Assembly (NCBI GenBank): GCA_029953675.1
Contig: JAMWBK010000011.1
Location: 434,001-498,000 of the forward strand
DNA: 64,000 nt
Direction of reading: 5' to 3'
Source of the DNA: Rhodosorus marinus CCMP1338
Taxonomy: Eukaryota; Plantae; Rhodophyta
Shown: piece by piece, positions 24,810 to 58,305 of the stretch
How positions within the stretch are numbered: position 1 is the stretch's first letter
How the letters are laid out: each line of letters begins with the position of its first letter
The notes under the pieces: generated by a model
What the model saw: only the letters and a program-made list of their open reading frames with translations
Databases searched by the model: none
Told to the model about the DNA's origin: nothing
Program-made: the position numbers and the translations under genes

Positions 24810-25514
24810 CATATAACTGCTATCAGACAGTTTATGACAACAATATCATTTGCCTTCTCAACAGGCTACGTACGCTAAAAAAGGAAAACGTGAGTTTATA
24901 TGGAGAACTTTTCCAGATTCGCCAAAGTCCCGCATTGTTCGGACTTTCGATCATGACACTGAATTACGCTAATACTTAACCATTCGTTCGTAATACTGAG
25001 ACGATATCTGACGCATTGACAGGTTTTATTGATAACTCCTGGGTCTGCATCTCATCGTGTTTGGACGAAGGTAACTATTTAGAAGTTCTCTGGACAGTCC
25101 AAGCGGGAACTGTTGGTGGAGATTGGGAGCGCATGGGAGACAGACTTTTGATATGGGTTTACCAAAACAGTACGGACATAAGCATTCTATAGGGCTTTTC
25201 GTCGGTTCTAACACCCCATCGGTGCGAGAGGCATGTACAGCGCAAAAGATCGAAACGTTCGTTGCCGCTGGCCAAACTCCGTCAACGCCTTCTCCTTTGC
25301 CGGTTGTGTTAATAATCAAGCTTTAGGTGGAAGCGTGAAAGGTTGAGTTTTTAGTTTTCGGTTTCGAGTCCGGGAGAAACTTTGCCTTTTTACTTTACGT
25401 TTCTTCGATTTGCGTCCTGTTTGGAGATCATTTTTGGTTTGAAGAACACACGCTCTCCCCACATGGATTTTAGGTTGTTTTCACTATATTGGAATGGTGC
25501 GTCGTTGATGTCCT

Positions 25515-26640
25515 GTAGGCTTTCCCTTTGGGTACAACAGGGTGATCCCTTGTCCCCTTTCCTACATGCCTGTGGACTACAACTCGTCTTGCTTTGTCTT
25601 CGCTCCGAATTCCCGCAGGTTCGTACGGTTGCATACCACGACGACGTGTGCCTCCTGGGGCCTCCCGATACTCTAGCGCTCGCTTATGATCGTCTCCGCT
25701 CCTTGGCTTCGCGGGTTGACTTGGAGGTTGATCATCACAAATCGTTCTACTGGGGAGGTGTACCTGCACAAGAGCAGCGTCGTTCCAGGATATTTGGAGA
25801 CCGGATGGTTTTGTCCACTTAGGCATCCCCTACGGGTCGCCGTCCTTCGTTGAAGGCGAGTTGCTGCAGCTCCTCGGTAAGCACAGACAGCTGGTTGCAG
25901 AGCTTCGACGGCTACCTCCGGGCTCTCTCCAGTGCTCGTTGTTGCTGTTTCGGTATTGTTGCAGTCAGCGGTTAACCTATTGGCTCCGCTCACTTCCAAC
26001 TCATTGGGGCCGGTGGTTGGCCACTCGTGCGGATGCTGAAAGTTTCCGTGACCTTGGGTATTTTCTCGATGAGGAGCTGAGCGCTCTGTCGCGACCCACC
26101 TGTGATGTGAACTTCGGCCTATAGTCCGGCAAGCCGGTCTGGAAATCGAACGTCAAAAACCTTTACCCGTCGCGGACTTTCAAAATGATGAACGCCGTGT
26201 AGCCGACCGGGTGATCACCTGTGACGACAGCCGCCGTACCACATACGTTGATCTTGCTGTTCCTAACCCTCAAGCTAGTCGTTATCCCCCGGCTGCGGGG
26301 GAGCGCCGTGGATCTGCCGCCGCCAGCATGAGACGCCGCAAAGAGATCAAATACGCGGGGGCTTTGTCTTCCCCTGGTGTTCGTGCTTCGGCACTAGCAC
26401 ATCGCTTGGTACCCCTGATCATTGAGTGCTTTGGGCTCATGGACTCTGTTGGTTCTCGCTGGCTTCGGGAGTTGTTCCGCGAACGCCCTGACCGTCTTCA
26501 ATCGTTGTTTACCCGCTTAAGTTTCCTGCTGTGGCGCATGAATGCCGCTTTGATGTTGGAGGCGCGAGTACTTCGCCGCGCTTAGTCTTTTTTTCCCCTC
26601 GGGGTTTTTTTTTTTCAGCCTCCGATTAAACCATTCGTTC
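25515..26640 (+). mobile_element. Family A element with reverse transcriptase motifs, internally deleted and frameshifted
   Basis: Encodes VQQGDPLSPFLHACGLQ...VAYHDDVCLLGP. An internal deletion at ~26108 joins the thumb region to the RLE region. The A-type 3' tail is present. Confidence 0.9.
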
Positions 26641-26692
26641 GGTTAAAAATAAGTCTGAGCAACGTTTACCGCACCTGCATTTGGAAATACTG

Positions 26693-30680: not shown

Positions 30681-32739
30681 CATGGCTGAATTCTGGTGCC
30701 AATGGTCTCCATTCAACTCGGAGTTACATTCCCCGTGTCTGCTCACCATGCGAAGTATGGGGTGCTGCTTCGCCTCTCAATGACTCCCCCACCGTTCCAA
30801 ATTATTGGAGGGTTTTGGTTTTGCCGCTTTTTGGGGAACCAGCGCGGGTGCTTTCCGTGTCTCCTGGGATCGCGCTTCGAATCCGAGCGTTGGTCAGTTT
30901 TCAATCGTGGTTTCTACCTGGATACGTGTTCTCACCTGCGATGCAGCAGACGGAGCCCTTGGCCCCATCAAGAGCGGAAAGGGGTTCCAGAGTTAACCTG
31001 CGCGGCGGCAGAGTGCCTTCCGGTGGGCCCTTGTTGGCATCTTGTCCGCAGGTCCTAGCCGCCCGGACTCGACGCTACCTGCCAGCGTCTGTCTGCTCGA
31101 CGTCAAGGCGCTGCAGCTCGGTCAATGCTGCAACTGAAGGAATCCCAGTACGCTGCGGCTATGTTGGACTCTTCACTTCGCGATTCGGCATTGTCCAATC
31201 GGTTTGTTCCACACATCATAGAGTGCTTTTCTTTGGTTTTTTGATAGTGTAGGTTCCCGTTGGCTTCGTCGGCTCTTTCGAAACAACCCAGGTCGTCTTG
31301 ATAGCCTGCTCACGGAGCTGTCCTTGACCCTCTAGCGTTCCAACGCTGCTTTATTGTTGGACGCCCCCGGAACCTCGTCAACAGATCCGTTTATTCAGAG
31401 CGTCATCAGCGTCTTGTTTCTCCCTTCTCCGGGTATTTAGGATCTGAATAAATGGACGATGCAGTAGGGCCTAACAGCATCGCGTCGGCGTCTCTTGTGG
31501 TACGAAAGTAGCTCCGTTTTTGTCGGCTGTGACTAGCTTGGTTGAGACCAAGCTAGCTGAGGCTGCTTGGGAGGAAGGAGCTCTCTCGCAGCTCGTCGAG
31601 AGCCTGGGAGCGCCGGTGTCCAGTCTCACGAGGAGCCCCAGTTTGATCTTGTAGAGCGTGTCCCCCCCCCCCCCCGCGGGCGACGACCGAAAGGGGGGTC
31701 AGTCAACGCGCGTGAGTCAGTCAAAACTCCCTTATCCCGGCACAGCAACGGTTGGCGGTTCCGGCGCGGGGCAGTGTGAGAGTCCCTAGTGGCCCCGGGG
31801 GCCCTGGCCGGGTCTCAGCTCTCGGAGGCTGACGGTGATCACGATGGAGGACAGGCAGGGCGATGTACGGACTCCACCAGTTAGGAGCGGTGGTGGAGAG
31901 GACGGAGGGACCCCACCTTGGGGCAAAATTCTCCAGGTACGCCATCACATGAGCCGGCGGTGCTCCTGCGAAGCAATGCCAAGAAAGCTGGTCAGTCTCA
32001 TCAGGTTTACTCAGAGCCCAACTACCCTGAGAATAGAGAGACAAGACGCTGATGACGCGCGTCTACAAACAAAATCTACAACCAAAGCAGCAGTTGAGCG
32101 CGACAGGGTCAAAGAATGCTCCGTGAGCAGACTATCTAGACGCCCTGGGTCGTTGCGAAAGATACCTCGCAGCCGGCAAGAACCTACACTATCTATGAAG
32201 CCAAAGTATTCAATAATGAGGAGGATAAACCGTATGTCACCACCGAATTGCGAAAGGTAGGGTTTGACATCGCTGCCGCGTACTGGGATTCTTTAACATG
32301 CCGCATGGACCGAGCTGCAGCGCCAGTCGCCTGAGGACAAGGGATGGAGAGGTCAACGTACTAACGGCGACGCGCATTTAGGTCAAACACAACGAGATCC
32401 GGCACCCGCTGTATCGCTGGGGCGTCACTCTCGTCAGCAATCTCCCTTGCTACCGCCAGAGGGACCTCATACTCCACTTCTCGGTCCGTACCGAGCGATT
32501 CAGAACAAAGGTAGCGGAAAAGCAACCGGTTGAGCCGCGTATGGGGTTTGGCCCGAGCCCCTTGAACCTCCGCACAAGACGCCACAAGTGCGCACCATAA
32601 TCACCCCAAGGCACATTGGCCCCGTACAATGCACATCGAGAATCCCGCTCAACAGGCCAAGCGGGTTGCGGCAGCCCCAGGTACAATCGCAAGCTTACAC
32701 GCACACCCACAAACTAGCGTTTAGATAGTCTGCTCACGG

Positions 32740-33842
32740 ATACTTACCTGGCCGGGCCGATCGCTCCTCACGTAAGAGCATCTGCTTGGATGAGAGTGAG
32801 TATGCTCACTCTCATCCAAGTGACGTGCTATGGCACGTCACTTTATCTTTTCGGGCATCTGTGGCAGTCTCGCTTGACTCCTACGAAGTAACCTCTGTGT
32901 GACTGTCGACGGCTTAATTTCTGACATGGGGAGATTGATGATCTGTTTATTCAGAGGCTAACTACCCTGAGAAGCGAGAGACAAGACGCTGATGACGCGC
33001 GTCCACAAACAAAGCAGAATTGGAGCGCCACAGGGTCAAAGAAAGCTCCGTGAGCAGACTATCTAAACGCCCTGGGTCGTCGCGAAACAGAGCTCGCAGT
33101 CAGCCAGAATCTACACTATCTATCAAGCCAAAGCGCTTAATGATGAGGGGAACGAACCGGTATGTCACCGCCGAATCGCGAAAGGTAGGGTTTGACATCG
33201 CTGCCGCGTACTGCGAATCTTTCACTTGCCGCATGGACCGAGCTGCAGCTCCTCGGCGCCGAGCCGACGCAGGCAGCTACCTGGTCGCCTGAGGACAAGG
33301 GATGGAGAGGTCAATGTACTCACTGCGACGCGCATTGAGGTCAGTCACAACGAGATCCGCCACCCGCTGTACCGCTGGGGCGTCACTCTCATCAGCAATT
33401 TCCGATGCCACCGCCAGAGGGACCTGATACTCCACTTCTCGGTCCGTACCGAGCGATTGAGAACGAAGGTAGCGGAAAAGCAAGCGGTTGAGCCGCGTAT
33501 GGCGTCTGGTCCGGGCCCCTTGAACCTCCGCACAAGACGCCAACAGATGCGCACCATAATCACCCCACGGCATATTGGCCCCCACAATGCGCATCTAGAA
33601 TCCCGCTCAACAGGCCAAAGGAGTTGCGGCAAGCTCAGGTAGAGTCGTAAGCTTACACGAAGTTCGAGATCGATAAGCGCCAACCGCGGATACGAAGGTA
33701 TGGCCGTAAAGAAACGGGAGCTGAGACTCCCCCAAAAACCCCGCAGGCGAGCGAAAGTCGACGCCGAGCACGAAGGTAAACTCAGAAGGGTGGCATGCGA
33801 GTCCCGATGTATTGGGAGATTCGCGTTCGCGCGACCTCCCCT
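32740..33842 (+). ncRNA. U1: U1 snRNA copy, probably a retroposed pseudogene, split into 32740-32936 and 33814-33842 by a retroelement
   Basis: 5' end ATACTTACCTGG. Helix H GCCG (32751-54) pairs with CGGC (32910-13). SL1 loop CTCACGTAA. Sm site AATTTCTG (32916-23). SL4 GGGGAGATTCGCG-TTCG-CGCGACCTCCCC is recovered after removing the insert. Confidence 0.9.
32937..33813 (-). mobile_element. Family B element (877 bp) inserted in U1 SL4
   Basis: 8-bp TSD gggagatt at 32929-32936 and 33814-33821. Tail gatgatctgtttattcagaggc. Confidence 0.92.
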
Positions 33843-33845
33843 AAC

Positions 33846-34749
33846 TCCCAAAAAAAAACATTTCGTGGGACATACATCGGGACTCCGGTGCCACCCTTCT
33901 GAGTTTACCTTCGTGCTCGGCGTCGACTTTCGCTCGCCTGCGGGGTTTGGGGGGGAGTCTCAGCTCCCGTTTCTTCACGGCCATACCTTCGTATCCGCGG
34001 TTGGCGCTTATCGATCTCGAACTTCGTGTAAGCTTACGACTCTACCTGAGCTTGCCGCAACCCCTTTGGCTTGTTGAGCGGGATTCTAGATGCGCATTGT
34101 GCGGGGCCAATGTGCCGTGGGGTGATTATGGTGCGCATCTGTTGGCGTCTTGTGTGGAGGTTCAAGGGGCCCGGACCAGACGCCATACGCGGCTCAACCG
34201 CTGCTTTTCCGCTATCTTCGTTCTCAATCGCTCGGTACGGACCGAGAAGTGGAGTATCAGGTCCCTCTGGCGATGGCATCGGAAATTGCTGATGAGAGTG
34301 ACGCCCCAGCGGTACAGCGGGTGGCGGATCTCGTTGTGACTGACCTCAATGCGCGTCGCAGTGAGTACATTGACCTCTCCATCCCTTGTCCTCAGGCGAC
34401 CAGGTAGCTGCCTGCGTCGGCTCGGCGTCGAGGAGCTGCAGCTCGGTCCATGCGGCAAGTGAAAGATTCGCAGTACGCGGCAGCGATGTCAAACCCTACC
34501 TTTCGCGATTCGGCGGTGACATACCGGTTCGTTCCCCTCATCATTAAGCGCTTTGGCTTGATAGATGGAGTAGGTTCTGGCTGACTGCGAGCTCTGTTTC
34601 GCGACGACCCAGGGCGTTTAGATAGTCTGCTCACGGAGCTTTCTTTGACCCTGTGGCGCTCCAATTATGCTTTGTATGTGGACGCGCGTCATCAGCGTCT
34701 TGTCTCTCGCTTCTCAGGGTAGTTAGCCTCTGAATAAATGATCATCATC
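33846..34749 (+). mobile_element. Family B 3' portion fused directly downstream of U1
   Basis: CCHC and RLE coding remnants, then ctgaataaatg(atc)3 tail. Confidence 0.9.
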
Positions 34750-35522
34750 GAGCTTTCTTTGACCCTGTGGTGCTCCAATTCTGCTTTGTTTGTGGACGCG
34801 CGTCATCCGCGTATTGTCTCTCGATTCTCAGGGTAGTTAGCCCCTGAATAAACGGGAAGTTCGAGGTCGGGAGGCGCCAATACGCAAGTATGACCGTCAA
34901 GAAGCGGGGGCTGAGACTCCCTCCCAAACCGCGCATGCGAGCCAAAACCGACGCCGAGGGGGAATGTGATGAACTCAGAAGGGCGGCCTACGAGTCCCAA
35001 TGTATGTCCCACGAAAGCGTTTTTCGGATTAAACGGATTCATGGTAGCTGCCGCAAAAAATAGGTCAGCCTCTGACACGCACGGAACCGGAAGATGAGCG
35101 GAGCGGTCTGGAGGTACCCTTCTGGGAGACTGCACAGCTCAGTCAGGAGCCCTTCGTGGTGAGTCAGTAGCGCGGAGAGGGTGCGTTCGACAAATATCGG
35201 GGTGCCCACGGGGAAGGACCCCGAACAGAATGAAGCTCCCAGACCGCCAAATGTCTCGAAACCTGGATGGAACCGCGTCCGCAGTGCAGGGAGACCCCCC
35301 CCAAAAAAAAATCGTACTTGGTATGGTTTATACGCACCCCACCAAGGAAACGACCTCGCCAAGAAAATCATTTGCCGGCACCAGATCGTCAGGGATGCCA
35401 AGGAGCGTCACATCGTCATGGAAGGCGACTACACGGACCCGCGGGAACTGATGTTTCAGCCGCTACAGCGCCAGTTGCAACTCACAGGCGCACGCAGAGG
35501 TACGGCCATAAGGGATCGCCCT

Positions 35523-36494
35523 GTTCCAGTTGATCCTCCTGATGATTCCCAGCGCGCTGGGAGCCGAGCTCAAGCACGCACGGATGCGCTGCAAAATATC
35601 TTTTCTTGGGACTTGCACCGTGCTGCATATGGCCGACTCCTCGCGCAGATGGTCTCATCTTCTCGCGCTCGCGCCCGCCTACTTAGTCTTGGAGGGGTTC
35701 TTAGCTCTCAGTGGCTCATGACCGTACCAGCCTTTCCGCCACTCACACTGTCGGATTTCGAAGTGCGTACTTCACTGCGCTTATACCTCGGCTTACATCA
35801 GCCCCCTTGGCCGTACGAGATGGGTTCGTCGTGCCCTCTCTGCTCTCAGACTGAAGACAACGCAGATTTTGGCGCCCACCTGCTCGCTAGTTGCTCGGCG
35901 GTGAAAGGTGCTCGAACCCGCCGCCACACACGGATCTTGAACCTGTTATACCGGGAACTTCGGCCTATAGTCCGGCAAGCCGGTCTGGAAATCGAACGTG
36001 AGAAACCTTTACCCGTCGCGGACTTTCAAAATGATGAACGCCGTGTAGCCGACCTGGTGATCACCTGTGACGACAGCCGCCGTACCACATACGTTGATCT
36101 TGCTGTTCCTAACCCTCAAGCTAGTCGTTCGTTACCTCCCGGCTGCGGGGGAGCGCCGTGGATCTGCCGCCACCAGCATGAGACGCCGCAAAGAGATCAA
36201 ATACGCGGGGGCTTTGTCTTCCCCTGGTGTTCGTGCTTCGGCATTAGCACATCGCTTGGTACCCCTGATCATTGAGTGCTTTGGGTTCATGGACTCTGTT
36301 GGTTCTCGCTGGCTTCGGGAGTTGTTCCGCGAACGCCCTGACCGTCTTCAATCGTTGTTTACCCGCTTAAGTTTCCTGCTGTGGCGCATGAATGCCGCTT
36401 TGATGTTGGAGGCGCGAGTACTTCGCCGCGCTTAGTCTTTTTTTCCCCTCGGGGTTTTTTTTTTCAGCCTCCGATTAAACCATTCGTTCGTTCG
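35523..36494 (+). mobile_element. Family A element, 5'-truncated, with a 4-bp frameshift at ~36127
   Basis: Near-identical to 17540-18427 and to the reverse complement of 23306-24290. Tail ttcgttcgttcg. Confidence 0.92.
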
Positions 36495-39400
36495 CTCCAT
36501 ACCCGTACGAGCCGCAAAGCTGTCGCTCTCGCCATACGGGTGACAAATCGGGGGCCGTTTGGCGCTTCACCATATACGCGACGTAAGAACTAGAAGCCTG
36601 CCGGGAGGAGCTAACGAACTAAGCGCGTGTGCTCGCGACACACTGTCCAAAAAACCCTTTCGTGGGACATACATCGGGACTCGTATGCCACCCTTCTGAG
36701 TTTACCTTCGTGCTCGGCGTCGACTTTGGCTCGCCTGCGCGGTTTGGGGGGGAGTCTCAGCTCCCGTTTCTTCACGGTCATGCCTTTAGATCCGTTTATT
36801 CAGAGGCTAACTACCCTGAGAAGCGAAAGACAAGACGTTGATGACGCGCGTCCACATACAAAGGAGAATTGGAGCGCCACAGGGTCAAAGAAAGCTCCGT
36901 GAGCAGACTATCTAAACGCCCTGGGTCGTTGCGAAACAGAGCTCGCAGCCAGCCAGAACCTACACTATCTATCAAGCCAAAGCACTCAATAATGAGGGGG
37001 ACGAACCGGTATGTCACCGCCGAATCGCGAAAGGTAGGGTTTGACATCGCTGCCGCGTACTGCGAATCTTTCACTTGCCGCATGGACCGAGCTGCAGCTT
37101 CTCGACGCCGAGCCGACGCAGGCAGCTACCTGGTCGCCTGAGGACAAGGGATGGAGAGGTCAATGTACTCACTGCGACGCGCATTGAGGTCAGTCACAAC
37201 GAGATCCGCCACCCGCTGTACCGTTGGGGCGTCACTCTCATCAGCAATTTCCGATGCAATCGCCAGAGGGACCTCATACTCCACTTCTCGGTCCGAACCG
37301 AGCGATTGCGAACGAAGATAGCGGAAAAACAAGCGGTTGAGCCGCGTATGGCGTCTGGTCCGGGCCCCTTGAACCTCCGCACAAGACGCCAACAGATGCG
37401 CACCATAATCACCCCACGGCACATTGGCCCCGCACAATGCGCATCTAGAATTCCGCTCAACAGGCCAACGGGGTTGCGGCAAGCCCAGGTAAAGTCGTAA
37501 GCTTACACGAAGGTCGAGATCGGTAAGCGCCAACCGCGGATACACAGGTATTACCGTGAAGAAACGGGAGTTGAGACTCCCTCCAAACCGCGCAGGCGAG
37601 CCCAAGTCGACGCCGAGCACGAAGGTAAACGGAACGGAGGTCCAGAACTGGAGGCCGCTGTTCAACAATGTACCGCCCTGCTGATCCGTTTACGCAGAGG
37701 CCAACTACCCTGAAAAGCGATAGACAAGACACTGATGACGCGCATCTACAAACAAAGCAGAATTGGAGCGAGCGCCACAGGGTCAAAGAAAGCTCCGTGA
37801 GCAGACTATCTAAACGCCCTGGGTCGTTGCGAAACAGAGCTCGCAGCGCTGCCGAGTGGTACCCAGGCTCTGTGCGATTCCTGCGCCTGGGCTGCAGTTC
37901 TTGACTCACTCGGTGGCCAGCGTTCGGGAGTCTCTGCTGCAGCACCGTGTGTTGGAAATGGTGTAGAAACTGCCCAGGATATTGACGCCGTGGCTGTGCC
38001 GTCGAGACCGCCAGAGGAGGGCGTTTCCCCGTCGGGTGCGGCCCCTTCGAGGACCGATGTAATCCAAAAGCCCCTTTCGTGGGACATACATCGGGACTCG
38101 TATGCCACCCTTCTGAGTTTACCTTCGTGCTCGGCGTCGATTTTGGCTCGCCAGCGCGGTTTGGGACCGTGAAGAAACTCCCGTTTCTTCACGGTCATAC
38201 CTCTTCGATCCGTTTATTCAGAGGCTAACTACCCTGAGACGCGAGAGACAAGACGATGATGACGCGCGTCCACAAACAACGCAGAATTGGAGCGCCACAG
38301 GGTCACAGAAAGCTCAAATCCGTTTATTCAGAGGCTAACTACCCTGAGAAGCGAGAGACAAGACGCTGATGACGCACGTCCACATACAAAGCAGAATTGG
38401 AGCGCCACAAGGTCAAAGAAAGCTCCGTGAGCAGACTATCTAAACGCCCTGGGTCGTTGCGAAACAGAGCTCGCAGTCAGCCAGAACCTACTCTATCTAT
38501 CAAGCCAAAGCACTTAATGAGGAGGGGGACGAATCGGTATGTCACCGCCGAATCGCGAAAGGTAGGGTTTGACATCGCTGCCGCGTACTGCGAATCTTTC
38601 ACTTGCCGCATGGACCGAGCTGCAGCTTCTCGACGCCGAGCCGACGCAGGCAGCTACCTGGTCGCCTGAGGACAAGGGATGGAGAGGTCAATGTACTCAC
38701 TACGACGCGCATTGAGGTCAGTCACAACGAGATCCGCCACCCGCTGTACCGCTGGGGCGTCACTCTCATCAGCAATTTCCGATGCCACCGCCAGAGGGAC
38801 CTCATACTCCACTTCTCGGTCCGTACCGAGCGATTGAGAACGAAGGTAGCGGAAAAGCAAGCGGTTGAGCCGCGTATGGCGTCTGGTCCGGGCCCCTTGA
38901 ACCTCCGCACAAGACGCCAACAGATGCGCACCATAATCACCCCACGGCACATTGGCCCCGCACAATGCGCATCCAATTCTGCTTTGTTTGTGGACGCGCG
39001 TCATCAGCATCTTGTCTCTCGCTTCTCAGGGTAGTTAGCCTCTGAATAAACGGATCATCTAGAATCCCGCTCAACAGGCCAAGGGGGTTGCGGCAAGCCC
39101 AGGTAAAGTCGTAAGCTTACACGAAGTTCGAGATCGGCAAGCGCCAACCGCGGATACGCAGGTATGACCGTGAAGAAACGGAAGGTTAGACTCAACCCTA
39201 AACGGCGCAGGCGATGCCAAAGTCGACGCCGAGCACGAAGGTAAAGAGAAGAGGGGTTCTTTCACGGAAGGGTTACGTTAGTCCAGTCTGGGTATGCACA
39301 CGCTAACTACCCTGAGAAGCGAGAGACAAGACGCCGATGACGCGCGTCCACAAACAAAGCAGAATTGGAGCGCCACAGGGTCAAAGAAAGCTCCGTGAGC

Positions 39401-41021
39401 AGACTATCTAAACGCCCTGGCTCGTTGCGAAACACTGCTCGCAGCCAGCGAGAACCTACACTATCTATCAAGCCAAAGCACTCAATAATGATGGGGACGA
39501 ACCGGTATGTCACCGCCGAATCGCGAAAGGTAGGGTTTGACATCGCTGCCGCGTACTGCGAATCTTTCACTTGCCGCATGGACCGAGCTGGAGCTCCTCG
39601 ACGCCGAGCCGACGCGGGCAACAGGGCGATCCCTTAGGGCCGTTCCTGCACGCTGTGGATTGCAACTGGTGCTGTTGCGGCTGAAACATCAGTTCCCGCG
39701 GGTCCGTGCGGTCGCCTTCCATGACGATGTGACGCTTCTTGGCACTCCCGACGATCTGGTGGCGGCCTACGATTTTCTCGGCGAGGTGGCTTCCTTGGTG
39801 GGGCTGCGTATCAACCATGCCAAGTACGCTTTCTGGGGGGGGTCTCACTGCACCGCGGACGCGGTTCCATCCAGGTTCCGAGATATTTGGCGAGCTGAGG
39901 GCTTCCTTCTGTTCGGTGTCCCCGTAGGCACCCCGATATTTGTTGACCGCAGCCTCTCCGCGCTCCTGAGTCATCATGATGAGCTCCTGACTGAGCTGTG
40001 CAGTCTCCCAGAAGGGTACCTCTAGACCGCTCTGCTCATCTTCCGGTTCAGCGGCTGACCTATTTTTTGCGGCAGCTACCCTTCGAGTGAGGGTCTTGGC
40101 TGGCGCTCCGCGCAGACCGACGAGCGAGGGACGTGCTAGGCACGCTGATGGATGCTTTTCAGGGTAGTTAGCCTTTGAATAAACGGATCGGATGGATGCT
40201 GAGCTATCTGTTTTGGGGGATTCAGAAAAGGAGGTCCTTCACCGGCAGATCGCGTTGCCCGTGCGGTTGGGTGGGCTGGCTGTGGGATCTTACGCGGCGA
40301 TCCAGCCGGCGGCTGCGGTGAGTTCGTGGGCCAATGCGCTTAATACATGGTCTACGGGGTGTGATCCGCATGTGAGTGGTTTTTTGAGTGGGCTTCGGGT
40401 TGGGCGGCTGGACGGGACTCTCGCCCCACGGCTCTGGGTTTTTTTTTCGGAACTGGAGGCCGCTTTTCAACAATGTACCGCCCTGCCGAGTGGTACCCAG
40501 GCTCGTTGCGATTCCCGGGCGGCAATTCTTGACTCACTCGGTGGCCAGCGTTCGGAAGTCTCTGCTGCAGCACCGTGTGTTGGAAATGGTGCACAAACTG
40601 CCGAGGATATTAACGCCGTGCCTGTGCCGTCGAGACCGCCAGAGGAGGGCGTTTCCCCGTCGGGTGCGGCCCCTTCGAGGACCGATGTAATCCAAAAAAC
40701 CCTTTCGTGGGACATACATCGGGACTCGTATGCCATCCTTCTGAGTTTACCTTCGTGCTCGGCGTCGATTTTGGCTCGCCTGCGCGGTTTTCGGGGAGTC
40801 TCAGCTCCCGTTTCTTCACGGTAATACCTGCGTATCCGCGGTTGGCCCTTATCGATCTCGAACTTCGTGTAAGCTTACGACTTTACCTGGGCTTGCCGCA
40901 ACCCCCTTGGCCTGTTGAGCGGGATTCTAGATGCGCATTGTGGGGGCCAATGTGCCGTGGGGTGATTATGGTGCGCATCTGTTGGCGTCTTGTGCGGAGG
41001 TTCAAGGGGCCCCGACCAGAC

Positions 41022-41407
41022 AAGGACTAGTTGGTCTCCAAATGGAGGCAGTTTACGTCTTCGAAACCAAGGAGTTCCATTTCACACTCACCGTTGAGGA
41101 GTCAAAGTTCTTCGCTGCAGCTCTAAAGGAGATCGACAATACGCTGACGTGGGTCATCTCAGAAGTTGACAACCTCGGGGCCGATCTGGGTACAGTTATT
41201 GGAACCGCCATTGCCGGGCTGGAGGACGCCGGTTCATTCATCGAGAACGCCATTGACACGAGCGCTAGTGCGATTGAAGCGGCAGAAGCCACCCTTGCGA
41301 AAGACATTTCAAACGCGATTGACGATGCCGTCGATACTACGGTGAACGCCGTCGTTTCGGGTTCAAAGACCGTGTACAAAAGCCTGAAAAATTTCAACGG
41401 TTGGTAG
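41022..41407 (+). pseudogene. 3' remnant (386 bp) of a paralog of the 43514-45253 gene
   Basis: Colinear with 44868-45253 apart from about 4 substitutions. It abuts a family B fragment at 41021. Confidence 0.9.
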
Positions 41408-43513
41408 ACTCCCGTACCCCAGACTAACGTAAACCCCGCTCGAAAAAAATTGTTGATGGAAACTTGGCGTATCCGTGGCATGCCCTGTACTCCTAGTGGA
41501 ATGAATAAAAACCAGTCAAAATAGACGTATTCGCGAACATGTGAAGACTATGCCCAATGGACACTTAAGCTATGGTACCAAGAGCGCTCTCCCAAACTAG
41601 CCTGTGCTGAGAAGACCGAAATCCGGTTAATATTAGGGCTTACCCGGAACTGTAGCTCGAAAATCCCTCCACCGTCATCCCAATACACTGGAAACCTCCT
41701 CAAAAACAACAATAAAAGAAACTCCCCCTCACGTCGTTTTCATCAACACCTCCCACGTTTTCCATTGAAGAACTTTCCAACCCCGTTGAGATCCAACCTG
41801 AATTGTTAAAAATGCATTGAAAAAGTTGCTCTTTTACTTCTTTCATTACGAGCCTCCAAAGGCGGATTCCTAGTAACAACCCCAGTGCGATTGACCGCCC
41901 CACTTTCTGACAAAGAAAAACCCCCTCGCGCAACACGAAACAGGAACAGTCAATCCCTTGAAAGATGTGAATCAAAACGGACAAATATAGCTACAAGTGC
42001 GCGGCCAACTAACCTCTCGGTTCTCCACATGTATATACTGCCTGCAGAAAATAATCTAGGCCATCCTCACCTCAGCCAACCCGCACACTGCCTCTCCTCT
42101 TAAGCCACCTCTCATTTCTCCGATCGAGTAGTAAACGTCCATCTCGAAACACTAAATATGGAAGCCAATCTAAAAACAAAACAAAACAAGGGTTTTCGTA
42201 CATCCCCGCATCCTGAAAAATAAATAATAACTCTGTGTCCGCTGCGATATCCTAGTTGTATTCAAATTATATAAATATTTCGGGGGTATTAGTATTAAAG
42301 CAATTTTCTAGATTTATCAGGAATGGATTGAAGCGGATTAATTTTTATTTTTAGAAAAGAAAAATCGATAAAGGGGGTCAAACTGTCGAGGTGGATTGGG
42401 TTTGACAAGCCAGGTTCTTAGCTGATCGGGAAGGTGCATCTTCTTAGTAAAAGGACGGCCTAATGGAGCCCATCACGAGTTAATTGAATATATCGGTGAG
42501 AAAAGGAACCTTAGTCTAGATGAGAAGGAGGAAATACGGAGGCATTGTGAGAAAACGGCGGAATGGTGGCATGAGGATGAATCAGTGTTAACTTTCTACT
42601 CGCTTACAAGAGTAGAATTTGTTTTGCTGTGCGTCCCTACGCCATCCGTTCGTCCGATAGAATTAATTGAATATTATGAGCGTAACCCGAGGATGGATCG
42701 GCTGATCGCCCCCACCCAACTCCTTCCTCTTCCACTGTGGGTGCCACATCTCCGGTCGCGGCTTGCTTTGCTTCGAAAGCAAGAAGGGTCTACTATAAAA
42801 TACAGAACGGGTACTTGTGCTGATTCCCGGGATGCCTGGGGAGCGAATTTGAACTATGACGGAAAACAGAGGATTGGGTTCTGCCGGTCGCCTCTTCCCT
42901 ACTGTGTCTGCCTTATCTCCCATCTATCGTATCTATCGTATTTCCGAAAACTAGCTCAGCTTAGCTTCCAAAATGTTGCTCAGGGCGATACGGGAAATGC
43001 CTGATTGCTTTCCGCAGGCGATAAACAACCTCGCTGTTGAAACTTTGGTTCTCGTGGAGAAGCAAATTTTAAAAGCGACATAGGAAACCTCTGGAAAAGA
43101 CGTTATCTTGTACTACTGAATTAGAAATTTTTTCACTAATTTTTTGCGTTGAGGTTTGGTAAGCGATCCCGCTAAAACACTGGACTTAGACTCTGCTCCC
43201 AAGCCCCTGAGTCCCATTTTGAGCCTGACACAAAACCCACTGCACGTGTGAAGTCCGGACAGTTGTTTTAGCAGCTGTCACATGCATCCACCCACAGTGA
43301 TTCACCGCTCACGTAACTGTCGCAATATCAACGGTCTTCGTCACAAGTGGAATGAAAGCTGCTGTTATCCAACCTTTGGTAACCCCAGTATATATATAGA
43401 GACCGTCGTTGGTCCTGGTGGTGAGTTCAAAGTAGTAGAGGATGCACAGAAGAGTCTGAGAGACTTTGACACATACGGCGACGAAACTGAAGTAGCAGAT
43501 AAGAAATCGAAAG

Positions 43514-54866: not shown

Positions 54867-55345
54867 GCTCAGCTCTTCTCCACAGATGAAGTTGAGGGCA
54901 GCAACAAGAACGAAAACCCGGGTACCACAAACCTAACACCCCGGCGACCAGACCGACCCAACTTAAATTTCTAAATTAATGACTATCTACGCAATTTAGA
55001 AAGTAAAGATTGTATTATGCAAACATTTCGTGAATTTTAGCATGGTTATTACAATAATTATGAATTATGTTGTACCTGTGTTAGGATAATTCGGCGATCG
55101 GTCGGGGCTTGGTATTCAGTCCTAATGTTCAAGGGGGACTTTTTCGTTGATGGGAAGAGTGACTAGGAATGGGGCATTTCGGAATTGTTTGATTTTGGTA
55201 TGTTTTAGAAGGTTTTTGCGGGTTTGGTTGGGTTTGCTGGGTAGTTTTTGGGGTATACTAGAAGGGAGGCTCTACTTTCCTTTCTTCTCGGCTGAAGGGG
55301 TTGGTTTTGTTAAGGGAGGAGCTTTGTTTCGTTATTTTGAGAAAG

Positions 55346-58305
55346 ATGGGCTCCTCGCTGCCTTCGAAGGAGCAGTCCCAGTTCCGTCAGCTGGTGAAGT
55401 TCTACGAGACGAAGCAGCACAAGAAGGCGCAGAAGACGGCGGACGGGATACTGAAGAAGTTTCCCAACCATGGGGAGACGTTGGCGATGAAAGGACTGGT
55501 TTTGAACTCTGTGAACAAAAAGGAAGAGGCGTATGAGCTGGTCAAGCTCGGGCTGAAGAACGATCTTAAATCGCACGTGTGCTGGCATGTCTATGGGCTC
55601 TTGTACCGATCAGATCGTCTGTACGTAGACGCTTCCAGGGCATACCTCCAGGCGTTAAGAATAGATCCTGAAAATGTCCAGATCCTCCGGGATCTGGCTC
55701 TGCTTCAGATCCAGACCCGGCACTTTGAGGGCTTCATATCCACGAGACGAACCCTGCTAACATTGAAACCAGGACAGAAGAACAACTGGATCGCTTTCGC
55801 CCTCGCGAATCACGTATTGAAAAACTACGCTGAGGCAGTGAAGATCATAGACACCTACTCCGCAACCATTGTCCCTGGAGACGACCGTGAGAGTGTCTAT
55901 GAAAGAGGTGAGCTCCAGCTCTACAAAAACTCCATCCTCGAAGAAAACGGAGACCACGATGCGGCGCTGAAACACCTAGAGAGAATAAAGGACATCGTCG
56001 TCGACCGATCGGCTTTTCTAGAGGCGCAAGCTCGTAACCTCCTCGCTCTGGAACGCAACAAGGAAGCCGAGGAAATCGCCCTCGAGCTGCTAGAGAGGAA
56101 CATGGAGAACTCCGTCTATCATGAACAGTACCATCAGGCAGTTCTCTCGGACGAGAACGTTGCTGAAGAGCACCAACCGCGCCGAAAAATCGAACTATGT
56201 GATGAACTTTCAAAATCCAATCCCAAAATGCTGCTTCCAAAGCGTATGCCTTTGGACCTCCTCGACCAAGGTAAGCCCATCGGGACTCGGCCGTGCCCTA
56301 CTATCTCCCTAGTCGCCTGCACGAGGTACGAGGAAGGAGCTAACTGCGTACCACCTCGTCATAAATTTTCCAGGTTCGAAGGAGGACTTTGTAAAGCGGC
56401 TCGATTCGTACGTTCGGTGGTTCCTGGAGAGAGGAGTACCTGCGCTCAGCGTGGACCTTAAGTCGCTGTACCGAGCAGAATGGAAAGTTTTGGCGATTGA
56501 GAAGCTTTTCACTGGCTTTGAGAACAGTCTGAAAGAATCTGGCGCCCTCCCTGCTGTCGACAACGATACGCATAGTCCCGTAAAGTCAGGCAACAGCAGT
56601 CCAGCGGTGGTTTTCTGGGTCATGCTGTTCCTTGCACAGCACTATGATCGAATTGGGGATCTCGACGGTGCTCTGAAGTACATTAATCGTGCGATCGAGC
56701 ACACTCCGACGGTGATCGAGGCCTTTCAGGTCAAGGCCAAGATACTCAAACACTGCGGAAATCTAACTGAGGCCGCCGAGGTGAGCAAATCATCACCATA
56801 AACCTCGCCATAATCGACGAACGAGCTCAAGCCCATCAATTCTCTCCGGCTTCCCCCCTCCTCCGTCTCTGATCTTGTCTGTGAAAAGTGCGCCGATGCC
56901 GCAAGAAAGATGGATCTGGCGGATCGATATCTAAATACAAAGTGTACTAAATACAACCTGAGGTGTAACAAAGTGGAAGAAGCAGAAGCTAACGTTGCTC
57001 TGTTCACGAGGGATGGTGAAACAAGAGGTGTTCAGGCATTATATGACATGCAGTGCATGTGGTAAGGTTTCAAGTTCACTGCCATGAAGCTTTCCAATGA
57101 TGCACCGCCCGAGTTCAGGTCTTTCTAAAGCGGATGGACCCTTTTTTTTCACCGGTTTCAAGGTTTGAATGTGAGATTGGTGATGCTTATATTAGGATGA
57201 AGAAACCCGGACTGGCGCTGAAGAATCTCAAGGCGGTAGAGAGACATTTCGATGACTTTATTGAGGATCAGTTCGATTTTCACACTTACTGCTTGCGGAA
57301 GGAGACCATGCGCTCATATGTTAACTTGCTGTTAGTGGAGGACGAGATAAGGTCAAGCAAATACTTCACCCGAGCTGCTAAGGCGGCGATTCGTTTGCAC
57401 ATTGATCTCCACGACAATCCGCAGCAGAAGGATGGTTCGGCTGAGCAAGCCGCTGCACTTGCCAACCTGTCCGTCGCGGAGAGGAAGAAGGCTCAATCCA
57501 AGTTGAGAAAATCCCAGGCGAAGAAGGCGGTAAGTTTTGTTGACTATTCCAATATTCCAATCGGCTTCGGCTAGTATGGAGCGGGGCGCTAAGGTCGTCG
57601 ATAATCTGCTACCGCTCCCAGGCCGCGGAAGAACTGAAGAAGAAGGATAACGGAAAGGCAGACGGGAAGAAGGGTAAGGGGGGTGGAGATGGATGGATGG
57701 AGACGGACCCGGACGGTTCAGAGCTGCTCAAAGGGATCAAGGACCACATGGTAGAAGCTGCTCGATTACTGAGGGAGCTCGAAAAATATGCTCCACGCGA
57801 TGTTGAAACGCACGAGCTTGCGTTTGAGGTGGCGATCCGCCGTAACAAATATTTGCAAGCGCTTAGAGCGGTGAACAGGGCGGCTGCGGTACAGCCTCGG
57901 TCATCGGCTTCGGTAAATCTGGTTGTACGGCTTCGTTTGGACGTGGAAGACAACGAGGAGAAGACAAGCTCAGCGTTACCCGAGGTCCTAGAGGTAGTTT
58001 CGACCTGTGGTACCCACAAGATCGTGGGAGATCGGAGCCTTTCCGGGTACGTCAATGAAATCATGACGGATAGTGCACAGAGTAGCGACACACGTTTGGG
58101 ATGCGGCATGGCTCTGCTTAGAATTGCCGGCAACGAAAACGAGAGGAGCAGGGCCATGGAAGTGCTCCAGGACCTGTCAGGAGCCTCGTTCAAGACCTGC
58201 CGTCAGCTTGCCTCGAGTCTCAGCTCATTCGCCAAAACGGAGGAAGTGGAGTCCTTCAAAGAAGCTGTGAAAGAGAAGTACCCGCAATGTACTGTGCCGT
58301 TGTAG
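55346..58305 (+). CDS. NAA15: N-alpha-acetyltransferase 15, NatA auxiliary subunit, multi-exon
   Basis: LPSKEQSQFRQLVKFYETKQHKK, HGETLAMKGL, SHVCWHVYGL, AIEHTPTVIE and DQFDFHTYCLRK. Confidence 0.95.

Follow-up and report, generated by a model that had tools for sequence, protein, structure and literature searches.

How does a U1 small nuclear RNA (snRNA) sequence that begins exactly at its first nucleotide come to lie within one transposable element (TE), fused at its 3' end to a piece of another? The question is raised by positions 32740 to 34749 of a 64-kb stretch of contig JAMWBK010000011.1 (the window, meaning the whole stretch of DNA that was analyzed). There, U1 is followed by the 5'-truncated body of a long interspersed nuclear element (LINE) of family B, a name that we keep from an earlier reading of the DNA made without database searches (the sequence-only reading). 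The locus was mapped by BLAST of the region against the 64-kb window and by direct reading of the sequence, with positions 33852 to 34749 serving as the coordinate reference, B_ref 1 to 898. It proved to be a nest of four levels: B0, the oldest copy of family B; B1, inserted into B0; the U1-B2 unit, inserted into B1; and B3, inserted into U1. Our preferred explanation, to which we assign a probability of roughly 60%, is that during target-primed reverse transcription the enzyme switched templates, leaving B RNA for mature U1 snRNA, and so formed the U1-B2 junction. The layout itself is seen directly; what we infer is its origin in such a switch, as opposed to a source locus where the junction had already been made. 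The anatomy of the locus, its nesting order, the empty sites, the precise ends of U1, and the class of the enzyme can all be read from the sequence.

The identity of the U1 copy was established with the Rfam U1 model (RF00003). In a permissive scan, model position 1 fell at position 32740, in agreement with the claim that the insert begins at U1 nucleotide 1, and the match scored 57.5 bits, with an E value of 6e-13 when the region is scanned and of 1e-11 over the whole window. The gathering cutoff of the model is 69.5 bits, and Rfam at gathering thresholds made no call anywhere in the window; as it stands, the U1 copy thus scores below that limit. The 57.5 bits were obtained on a U1 still interrupted by B3, and we attribute the shortfall to the displacement of stem-loop 4 by B3, where the model is forced onto the B3 tail. 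The stretch at the U1 5' end that recognizes 5' splice sites by pairing, AUACUUACCUG, matches exactly at positions 32740 to 32752 (model positions 1 to 13), and ATACTTACCTGGC has a single occurrence in the window. Stem-loop 4, GGGAGATTCGCGTTCGCGCGACCTCCCC, is a 28-mer that is unique in the window and was recovered in 0 of 100 shuffles. Its position, 33814 to 33841, places the end of U1 at about 33842, where the sequence-only reading had put it.

That reading had both ends of U1 right and made no mention of a separate and later insertion that splits U1. This is B3, an 877-bp copy in the opposite orientation that sits inside stem-loop 4 between direct repeats of GGGAGATT. On the plus strand, nucleotides 1 to 197 of U1 occupy positions 32740 to 32936 and comprise the 5' splice-site recognition sequence, stem-loops 1 to 3, and the Sm site AAUUUCUGA, breaking off halfway through stem-loop 4. 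B3, a young 5'-truncated copy on the minus strand (B_ref 896 to 21, with an extra T at 33813), fills positions 32937 to 33813. The plus-strand sequence then resumes with the right-hand repeat at 33814 to 33821 and the U1 3' end at 33822 to 33842 (CGCGTTCGCGCGACCTCCCCT). Because the repeat stands on both sides of B3, with its left copy read directly at 32929 to 32936 (plus strand), B3 is a later insertion of the ordinary kind that duplicated 8 bp of its target site. Its nick in U1 reads GAGATT^CGCG, and its tail, GAATAAACAGATCATC, abuts the U1 sequence.

Once B3 and one copy of the duplication are taken out, the rebuilt U1 is 218 nucleotides (nt) long and carries all of the U1 hallmarks. Its folding energy is -92 kcal/mol (z = -5.6 relative to shuffles), and in the predicted fold the 5' end is free, stem-loops 1 and 3 are present, the Sm site is single-stranded, and stem-loop 4 is capped by UUCG. 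After the Sm site, the collapsed stem-loop 4 reads GGGGAG-AUU-CGCG-UUCG-CGCG-AC-CUCCCC. The core of this hairpin, GCGUUCGCGC, is shared with a genuine U1 found in a metagenome contig (Ga0126328_10059466, positions 502 to 705 on the minus strand, 106.7 bits) that is otherwise unrelated to the window. Stem-loop 2 of the metagenome U1 is enlarged by 74 nt, which indicates that a long U1 is not odd in itself. In the copy studied here, the stem-loop 2 region contains near-perfect hairpins (a 36-nt palindrome at 32785 to 32820 and 26 nt at 32818 to 32843). Together with the stretch that follows them, these hairpins amount to a 67-nt insertion relative to the Rfam model, which may or may not be native.

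The 3' end of U1, straight after the stem of stem-loop 4, meets the B2 body in the same orientation within 0 to 3 nt, so the claim that U1 joins a 5'-truncated B element after a few nucleotides holds. B2 occupies positions 33846 to 34749 on the plus strand, encodes the C-terminal CCHC knuckle and the restriction-like endonuclease part of the family B open reading frame (ORF), and ends at 34749 with the tail GAATAAATGATCATCATC (GAATAAAT-GATCATCATC). We compared the junction across five B copies in the region upstream of TCGTGGGACATAC. The copies that extend farther toward full length read ...gatgtaatccaaaaaaccctt there, and the B2 junction reads cccct-aac-tcccaaaaaaaaacatt. B2 starts at the tccaaaaaaccctt point, and a B copy at 36645 starts at the same point after unrelated sequence. 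From this comparison of B 5' regions, the bases AAC at 33843 to 33845 (plus strand) lie between U1 and B2; they may be untemplated, may be trailing bases of the U1 3' end, or may be the B dinucleotide "aa" with one inserted base.

Several observations concern the 5' ends of B copies more generally. The 5' end tcc(a)aaaaa, at B_ref about -5, is common to B2 (33846) and the copy at 36645, and B0, set against the copy at 39621 to 41021, shows a break of about 600 bp close to that point (35031 to 35043). The shared break point at B_ref about -5 may represent an RNA 5' end or a favored point of exit from the template. Extra 5' bases occur at one other B junction, that of B1, where there are 15 nt. 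Neither this 15-nt filler at 32702 nor the 160 nt that lead up to the start of the B copy at 36645 (36486 to 36645) match anything else.

A junction of this form could also arise by read-through, or 5' transduction. A B element inserted just downstream of a real U1 gene would have cut it off from its 3'-end processing signal, and a transcript from the U1 promoter would have been retrotransposed into B1; having a B 3' end, such an RNA would be a substrate for the B machinery. The product would likewise start at the U1 transcription start, end in the B tail, and occupy a single site. B does insert into or beside U1 sequence, as B3 bears witness, and 5' extensions acquired from upstream promoters have been discussed for the crocodilian SINEU elements (PMC4494074). 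However, the route requires a coincidental insertion of B within 0 to 3 nt of the U1 3' end, and no U1 3'-flank sequence is kept, the junction coinciding with the predicted mature U1 3' end. Moreover, the 5' end of B2 is the same as that of a copy without U1, which is a better fit to an RNA end or a switch point, and the 64-kb window holds no second copy of the U1-B junction. We consider read-through unlikely, though it is the main rival.

An arrangement of snRNA at the 5' end and LINE at the 3' end had been put forward as the signature of template switching. Since a read-through transcript gives the same layout, it is not diagnostic, and the origin of the junction has to be argued. The unit opens with a complete small RNA, closes with a 5'-truncated LINE that has its own tail, and sits as a whole at one target site. 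The mammalian U6/L1 chimeras are built in this way, and a template switch is accordingly the likeliest route. If the switch did occur, the native U1 gene would be expected to have a 3' flank that does not start with AACTCCCAAAA.

That the U1-B2 unit entered as a single piece is indicated by the empty sites. Joining position 32739 to 34751 restores B1 without a gap (GCTCACGG followed directly by AGCTTTC), as matched to an independent B copy, which bears out the statement that the unit interrupts an older copy. Joining 32701 to 34857 in turn restores B0 (CTCGAACTTC followed directly by GTGTAAGCTT), as matched to another copy. Because these joins are continuous, the U1-B2 unit is one insertion at a single point of B1. 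Its target duplication is 1 to 2 bp (G or GA), with the G at 34750 repeating the G at 32739, and it terminates in a B tail of the kind that other B copies carry. The immediate 5' flank of the chimera is the left half of B1 (32717 to 32739, plus strand, B_ref 763 to 785), and the immediate 3' flank is its right half (34750 to 34856, plus strand, B_ref 785 to 887 plus a tail CGG). The 24-nt stretch from 32717 to 32740 is 100% identical to six other B copies, its last base doubling as U1 nucleotide 1. We also considered a serial template jump as the source of the two B1 halves, with exit at B_ref 785 and a later return, and rejected it as less simple than insertion; B1 is also more diverged than B2.

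Outside B1 lies B0, on the minus strand. Its 3' and middle parts are at 32006 to 32321 (B_ref 887 to 584) and 32326 to 32701 (B_ref 549 to 174), with 84% and 89% identity to B_ref by BLAST, and once the intervening sequence is removed they run on into the 5' part at 34857 to 35040 (B_ref 172 to about -5), on the far side of the B1 insertion site. Between B0 and B1 are the 15 nt at the B1 5' end, CACACCCACAAACTA (32702 to 32716, plus strand), which occur once in the window and match no B copy.

The same boundaries bear on whether U1 and B2 could have arrived separately. In that case a U1 retropseudogene would have landed at the B1 site CACGG^AGC and B2 would have used the same nick just 3' of it. 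B_ref 785 does carry another B 3' junction (38315/38323), so the site has been cut repeatedly. Yet U1 alone offers no B 3' end at which the enzyme could start, U1 is followed by no tail or A-run, and no target duplication surrounds U1 by itself. The second cut would also have had to hit the U1/B1 boundary exactly, and we find such a sequence of two events quite improbable.

The flanks likewise speak to the status of U1 as a gene. Upstream of it, everything is B sequence (32326 to 32701 and 32717 to 32739) except the 15 nt, and no snRNA promoter can therefore be present, in keeping with the earlier observation that the upstream sequence is TE. A native U1 gene later ringed by transposon insertions would account for a U1 that is full length and, B3 apart, structurally intact-looking. 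But B sequence begins at position -1 and again 0 to 3 nt past the 3' end, and the bases that border the unit on either side are immediate neighbors in a single B copy, which leaves no space for an upstream promoter or a 3' box. The empty-site join brings this explanation close to refutation, and we give it almost no weight. Without a promoter, and split by B3, the U1 copy is taken as nonfunctional and is most likely dead.

A further concern was whether the nest is real. B3 and B2 form an 877-bp inverted repeat whose arms are only 58 bp apart, as could be produced by a misassembly or a DNA rearrangement, for example by a fold-back chimeric read. Against this, the arms are 97.5% identical and differ at about 22 positions, their tails differ (CAGATCATC versus TGATCATCATC), and so do their outer ends. 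B3 also has its own 8-bp target duplication, and a third copy at 38316 to 38973 is equally close to both arms, the three being about 97% alike. An equidistant third copy and unlike tails identify the arms as independent insertions of one young subfamily. A fold-back artifact and gene conversion between the arms were both ruled out by the arm differences and the equidistant third copy, and an artifact or rearrangement of any kind appears extremely improbable. Divergence from the B consensus tracks nesting depth, at about 10 to 11% for B0, 5.6% for B1, 3.6% for B2, and 2.6% for B3. As a separate matter, the inverted repeat could favor hairpin formation or rearrangement of the locus.

The enzyme that made these insertions can be characterized from the coding sequence of family B and its sister family C. 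The family B protein has the reverse transcriptase (RT) motif FHDD, which is YHDD in family C. The motif is followed by C-x2-C-x10-H-x4-C, by VQGARTRRH, and by acidic residues in ADLVV and YIDLS, and the stop codon lies about 20 nt ahead of GAATAAA. Every B copy in the window is truncated at the 5' end, either within or after the reverse transcriptase. Searches with a composite B protein returned no homologue and no Pfam family, and the only PDB match, to an R2 protein at the CCHC/VQGARxRRH motif, was weak (E 0.22). Family C has an intact ORF of 364 amino acids (35181 to 36275) for which an exhaustive HMMER search found 69 relatives. The long relatives have Pfam RVT_1 upstream of the matching region, and every aligned sequence keeps the residues C, R-H, E, D, D, and P. 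By these motifs, family B is a LINE whose RT is followed, toward the C terminus, by a CCHC knuckle and by a restriction-like endonuclease (RLE) of the PD-(D/E)xK type, and the RLE that had been proposed from the sequence alone stands. We assign the element to the RLE-LINE group (R2, CRE, NeSL, R4, and HERO) and no more narrowly; the LINE clades with a restriction-like endonuclease are listed in PMC4640811. The hallmark of CRE elements, insertion into spliced-leader RNA genes, was not seen among the B 3' junctions, which lie in B copies, U1, and unrelated DNA.

The best relative of the family C ORF is a transcript of Rhodosorus marinus, with 83% identity. This match indicates that the host is probably a stylonematophycean red alga and that the elements are transcribed. 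A chromosome-level assembly of R. marinus exists (PMC10250338). The two family C copies (35181 to 36275 and 25500 to 26650) end in ...TTTTTCAGCCTCCGATTAAACCATTCGTTCG. Two other structural interpretations of family B were rejected. The first approximately 170 nt of B2 (B_ref about -5 to 172), which turn up again, inverted, beside B 3' ends, are ordinary coding sequence, continuous with the ORF, and not a terminal inverted repeat or a Penelope- or DIRS-like feature. The inverted neighbors of B 3' ends are explained by nested insertions, and the empty sites join cleanly. Elsewhere in the window, positions 55301 to 56461 hold an exon-like ORF for a NatA auxiliary subunit (TPR protein, Pfam PF12569), whose best match, at 64% identity, is a Logan contig.

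The target sites of family B were compiled from the approximately 10 B 3' junctions in the window. One of these, that of B3, is in U1, and the others are in B copies or unrelated DNA; with U1 holding a single junction out of about 10, B was ruled out as a U1-specific element. Family B reinserts at the same points of B sequence (34749/34750, 38315/38323, 34856/34857, 38212/38213, 36786/36795, and 32701/32702). Two independent 3' junctions, 34749/34750 and 38315/38323, fall exactly at B_ref 785, directly before GAGCTTTC, and three or four fall at B_ref about 140 to 173. The nicked strand at B sites reads CTC^CGTG, CTTC^GTGT, or CTTC^GTAT, which suggests a loose cleavage preference of the form YTC^(C)GT. 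A strongly 5'-truncated B copy of only 93 bp (38967 to 39059) is nested in a further B copy, where it is accompanied by a target duplication of 4 bp (B_ref 238 to 241). Duplications of 0, 1 to 2, 4, and 8 bp indicate that the staggering of the two cuts varies.

Taken in order, the events of a template switch would run as follows. The family B enzyme would have nicked the bottom strand of the older copy B1 at ...AAAGCTC^CGTGAG..., and the nicked end would have served as the primer for copying a B RNA, starting in the (AUC)n tail. After some 0.9 kb the enzyme would have left the B RNA, at a position that is also an end of at least one other B copy. With at most 3 extra bases in between, it would have moved on to a mature U1 snRNA, entered it at the 3' end, and read it through to nucleotide 1. 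Joining of the cDNA to the upstream target, with a duplication of 1 to 2 bp, would then have given 5'-U1-(AAC)-B2-tail-3' within B1. Later, B3 entered stem-loop 4 of U1 in the opposite orientation, with its 8-bp target duplication.

Several points count against a template switch. It is represented by a single example, and no other piece of U1, another snRNA, or a tRNA is attached to any A, B, or C copy in the 64 kb. The U1-B junction may have come from a genomic source locus. The AAC can be read as B sequence with a one-base insertion or deletion, so that untemplated bases are not secure. The mature 3' end of U1 is here a model prediction, and template jumping is ascribed to the family B enzyme by its likeness to R2-type enzymes.

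The sequence-only reading had gone further and suggested that these elements capture cellular RNAs; that they do so as a habit is more than one locus can show. The check that it proposed, a search for other snRNA or tRNA copies fused to A, B, or C bodies, came back empty within the window. A permissive Rfam scan found no other small RNA in the window, ARAGORN found no tRNA there, and a permissive scan of positions 35000 to 42000 found no RNAs captured at other B 5' ends. Beyond the window, a B 23-mer and the U1 3' end had no match in the viral and prokaryote genomes scanned, and a metagenome scan yielded only the unrelated long U1 described above (L002) and a chance match (L001). A more ambitious version of the template-switch explanation is conceivable, in which B transcripts begin at a fixed point near B_ref -5 and the enzyme jumps regularly from there onto abundant small RNAs, leaving many snRNA-B chimeras. 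Alternatively, the chimera, or a source driven by a U1 promoter, might have founded an amplifying, U1-headed, nonautonomous family in red algae, produced by an RLE LINE. We regard this extension as doubtful, with a slim chance of being right.

The process proposed for U1-B2 is a known one, and what is new here is the host and the type of element. Addition of U1, U2, or U6 to the 5' ends of LINE-mobilized copies by template switch has been described from mammals, crocodilians, and a fungus (PMC4476161, PMC4494074). The suggestion that such a chimera had not been described for this kind of element in algae overrates its novelty: we found no description of an snRNA/LINE chimera for an RLE LINE or for red algae in the literature, but such chimeras are known elsewhere. 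If the template switch is real, snRNA/LINE chimeras would no longer be confined to animals and fungi, or to LINEs whose endonuclease is of the apurinic type. The clean four-level nest also provides target sites, duplication lengths, and tail variation for an undescribed element family.

The closest parallel in structure is with the U6/L1 and other snRNA/L1 chimeras of mammals (Buzdin 2002, 2003; Garcia-Perez 2007; cited via PMC4476161). U1-B2 shares with them a full-length snRNA, complete from nucleotide 1, whose 3' end runs directly into a 5'-truncated LINE of like orientation; in both cases the LINE tail closes the unit, which occupies one target site. U6/L1 is attributed to a template switch in target-primed reverse transcription. 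The mammalian chimeras, most of which involve U6, differ in being products of L1, whose endonuclease is of the apurinic type and whose tail is poly(A), whereas the U1-B2 chimera has an RLE, an (ATC)n tail, a duplication of 1 to 2 bp, U1 as partner, and a probable red-algal host. The SINEU elements of crocodilians are short interspersed nuclear elements with U1- or U2-derived heads, for which an origin by template switch has been proposed (PMC4494074). They share with U1-B2 the U1 sequence at the 5' end of a LINE-mobilized unit. However, SINEU are amplified families of many copies, and U1-B2 is seen as one copy, with a 0.9-kb coding LINE body and no sign of amplification.

Outside animals, MINE and tripartite chimeras are found in Magnaporthe (Fudal 2005; Gogvadze 2007; likewise cited via PMC4476161). 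MINE resembles U1-B2 as a chimeric retrocopy explained by LINE template jumps and differs from it in that the partner is not an snRNA. The Magnaporthe LINE, MGL, is of the apurinic-endonuclease type. Utopia is a LINE that targets snRNA genes, namely U2, and its copies are mostly flanked by U2 genes (PMC4640811). As with Utopia, an RLE element lies inside snRNA sequence here (B3 in U1 stem-loop 4); in contrast to Utopia, only B3 among the B copies is flanked by U1.

The enzymatic parallel is with R2-type enzymes, which jump end to end between templates in vitro (PMC8594491 and references therein). Family B, like R2, has a LINE RT with a C-terminal CCHC knuckle and an RLE. When R2 jumps, it passes from the 5' end of the template just copied to the 3' end of a new one, with a few extra bases at the join, and the U1/B2 junction looks alike. 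R2 jumping is in vitro biochemistry, whereas U1-B2 is the genomic product of a very distant relative (PDB match, E 0.22). If the junction did arise by a template switch, it would be natural, in-genome evidence of the end-to-end jumps of RLE LINEs, so far characterized mainly in vitro with R2-type enzymes, and it would come from an element on a deep branch, probably in a red alga, very distant from R2.

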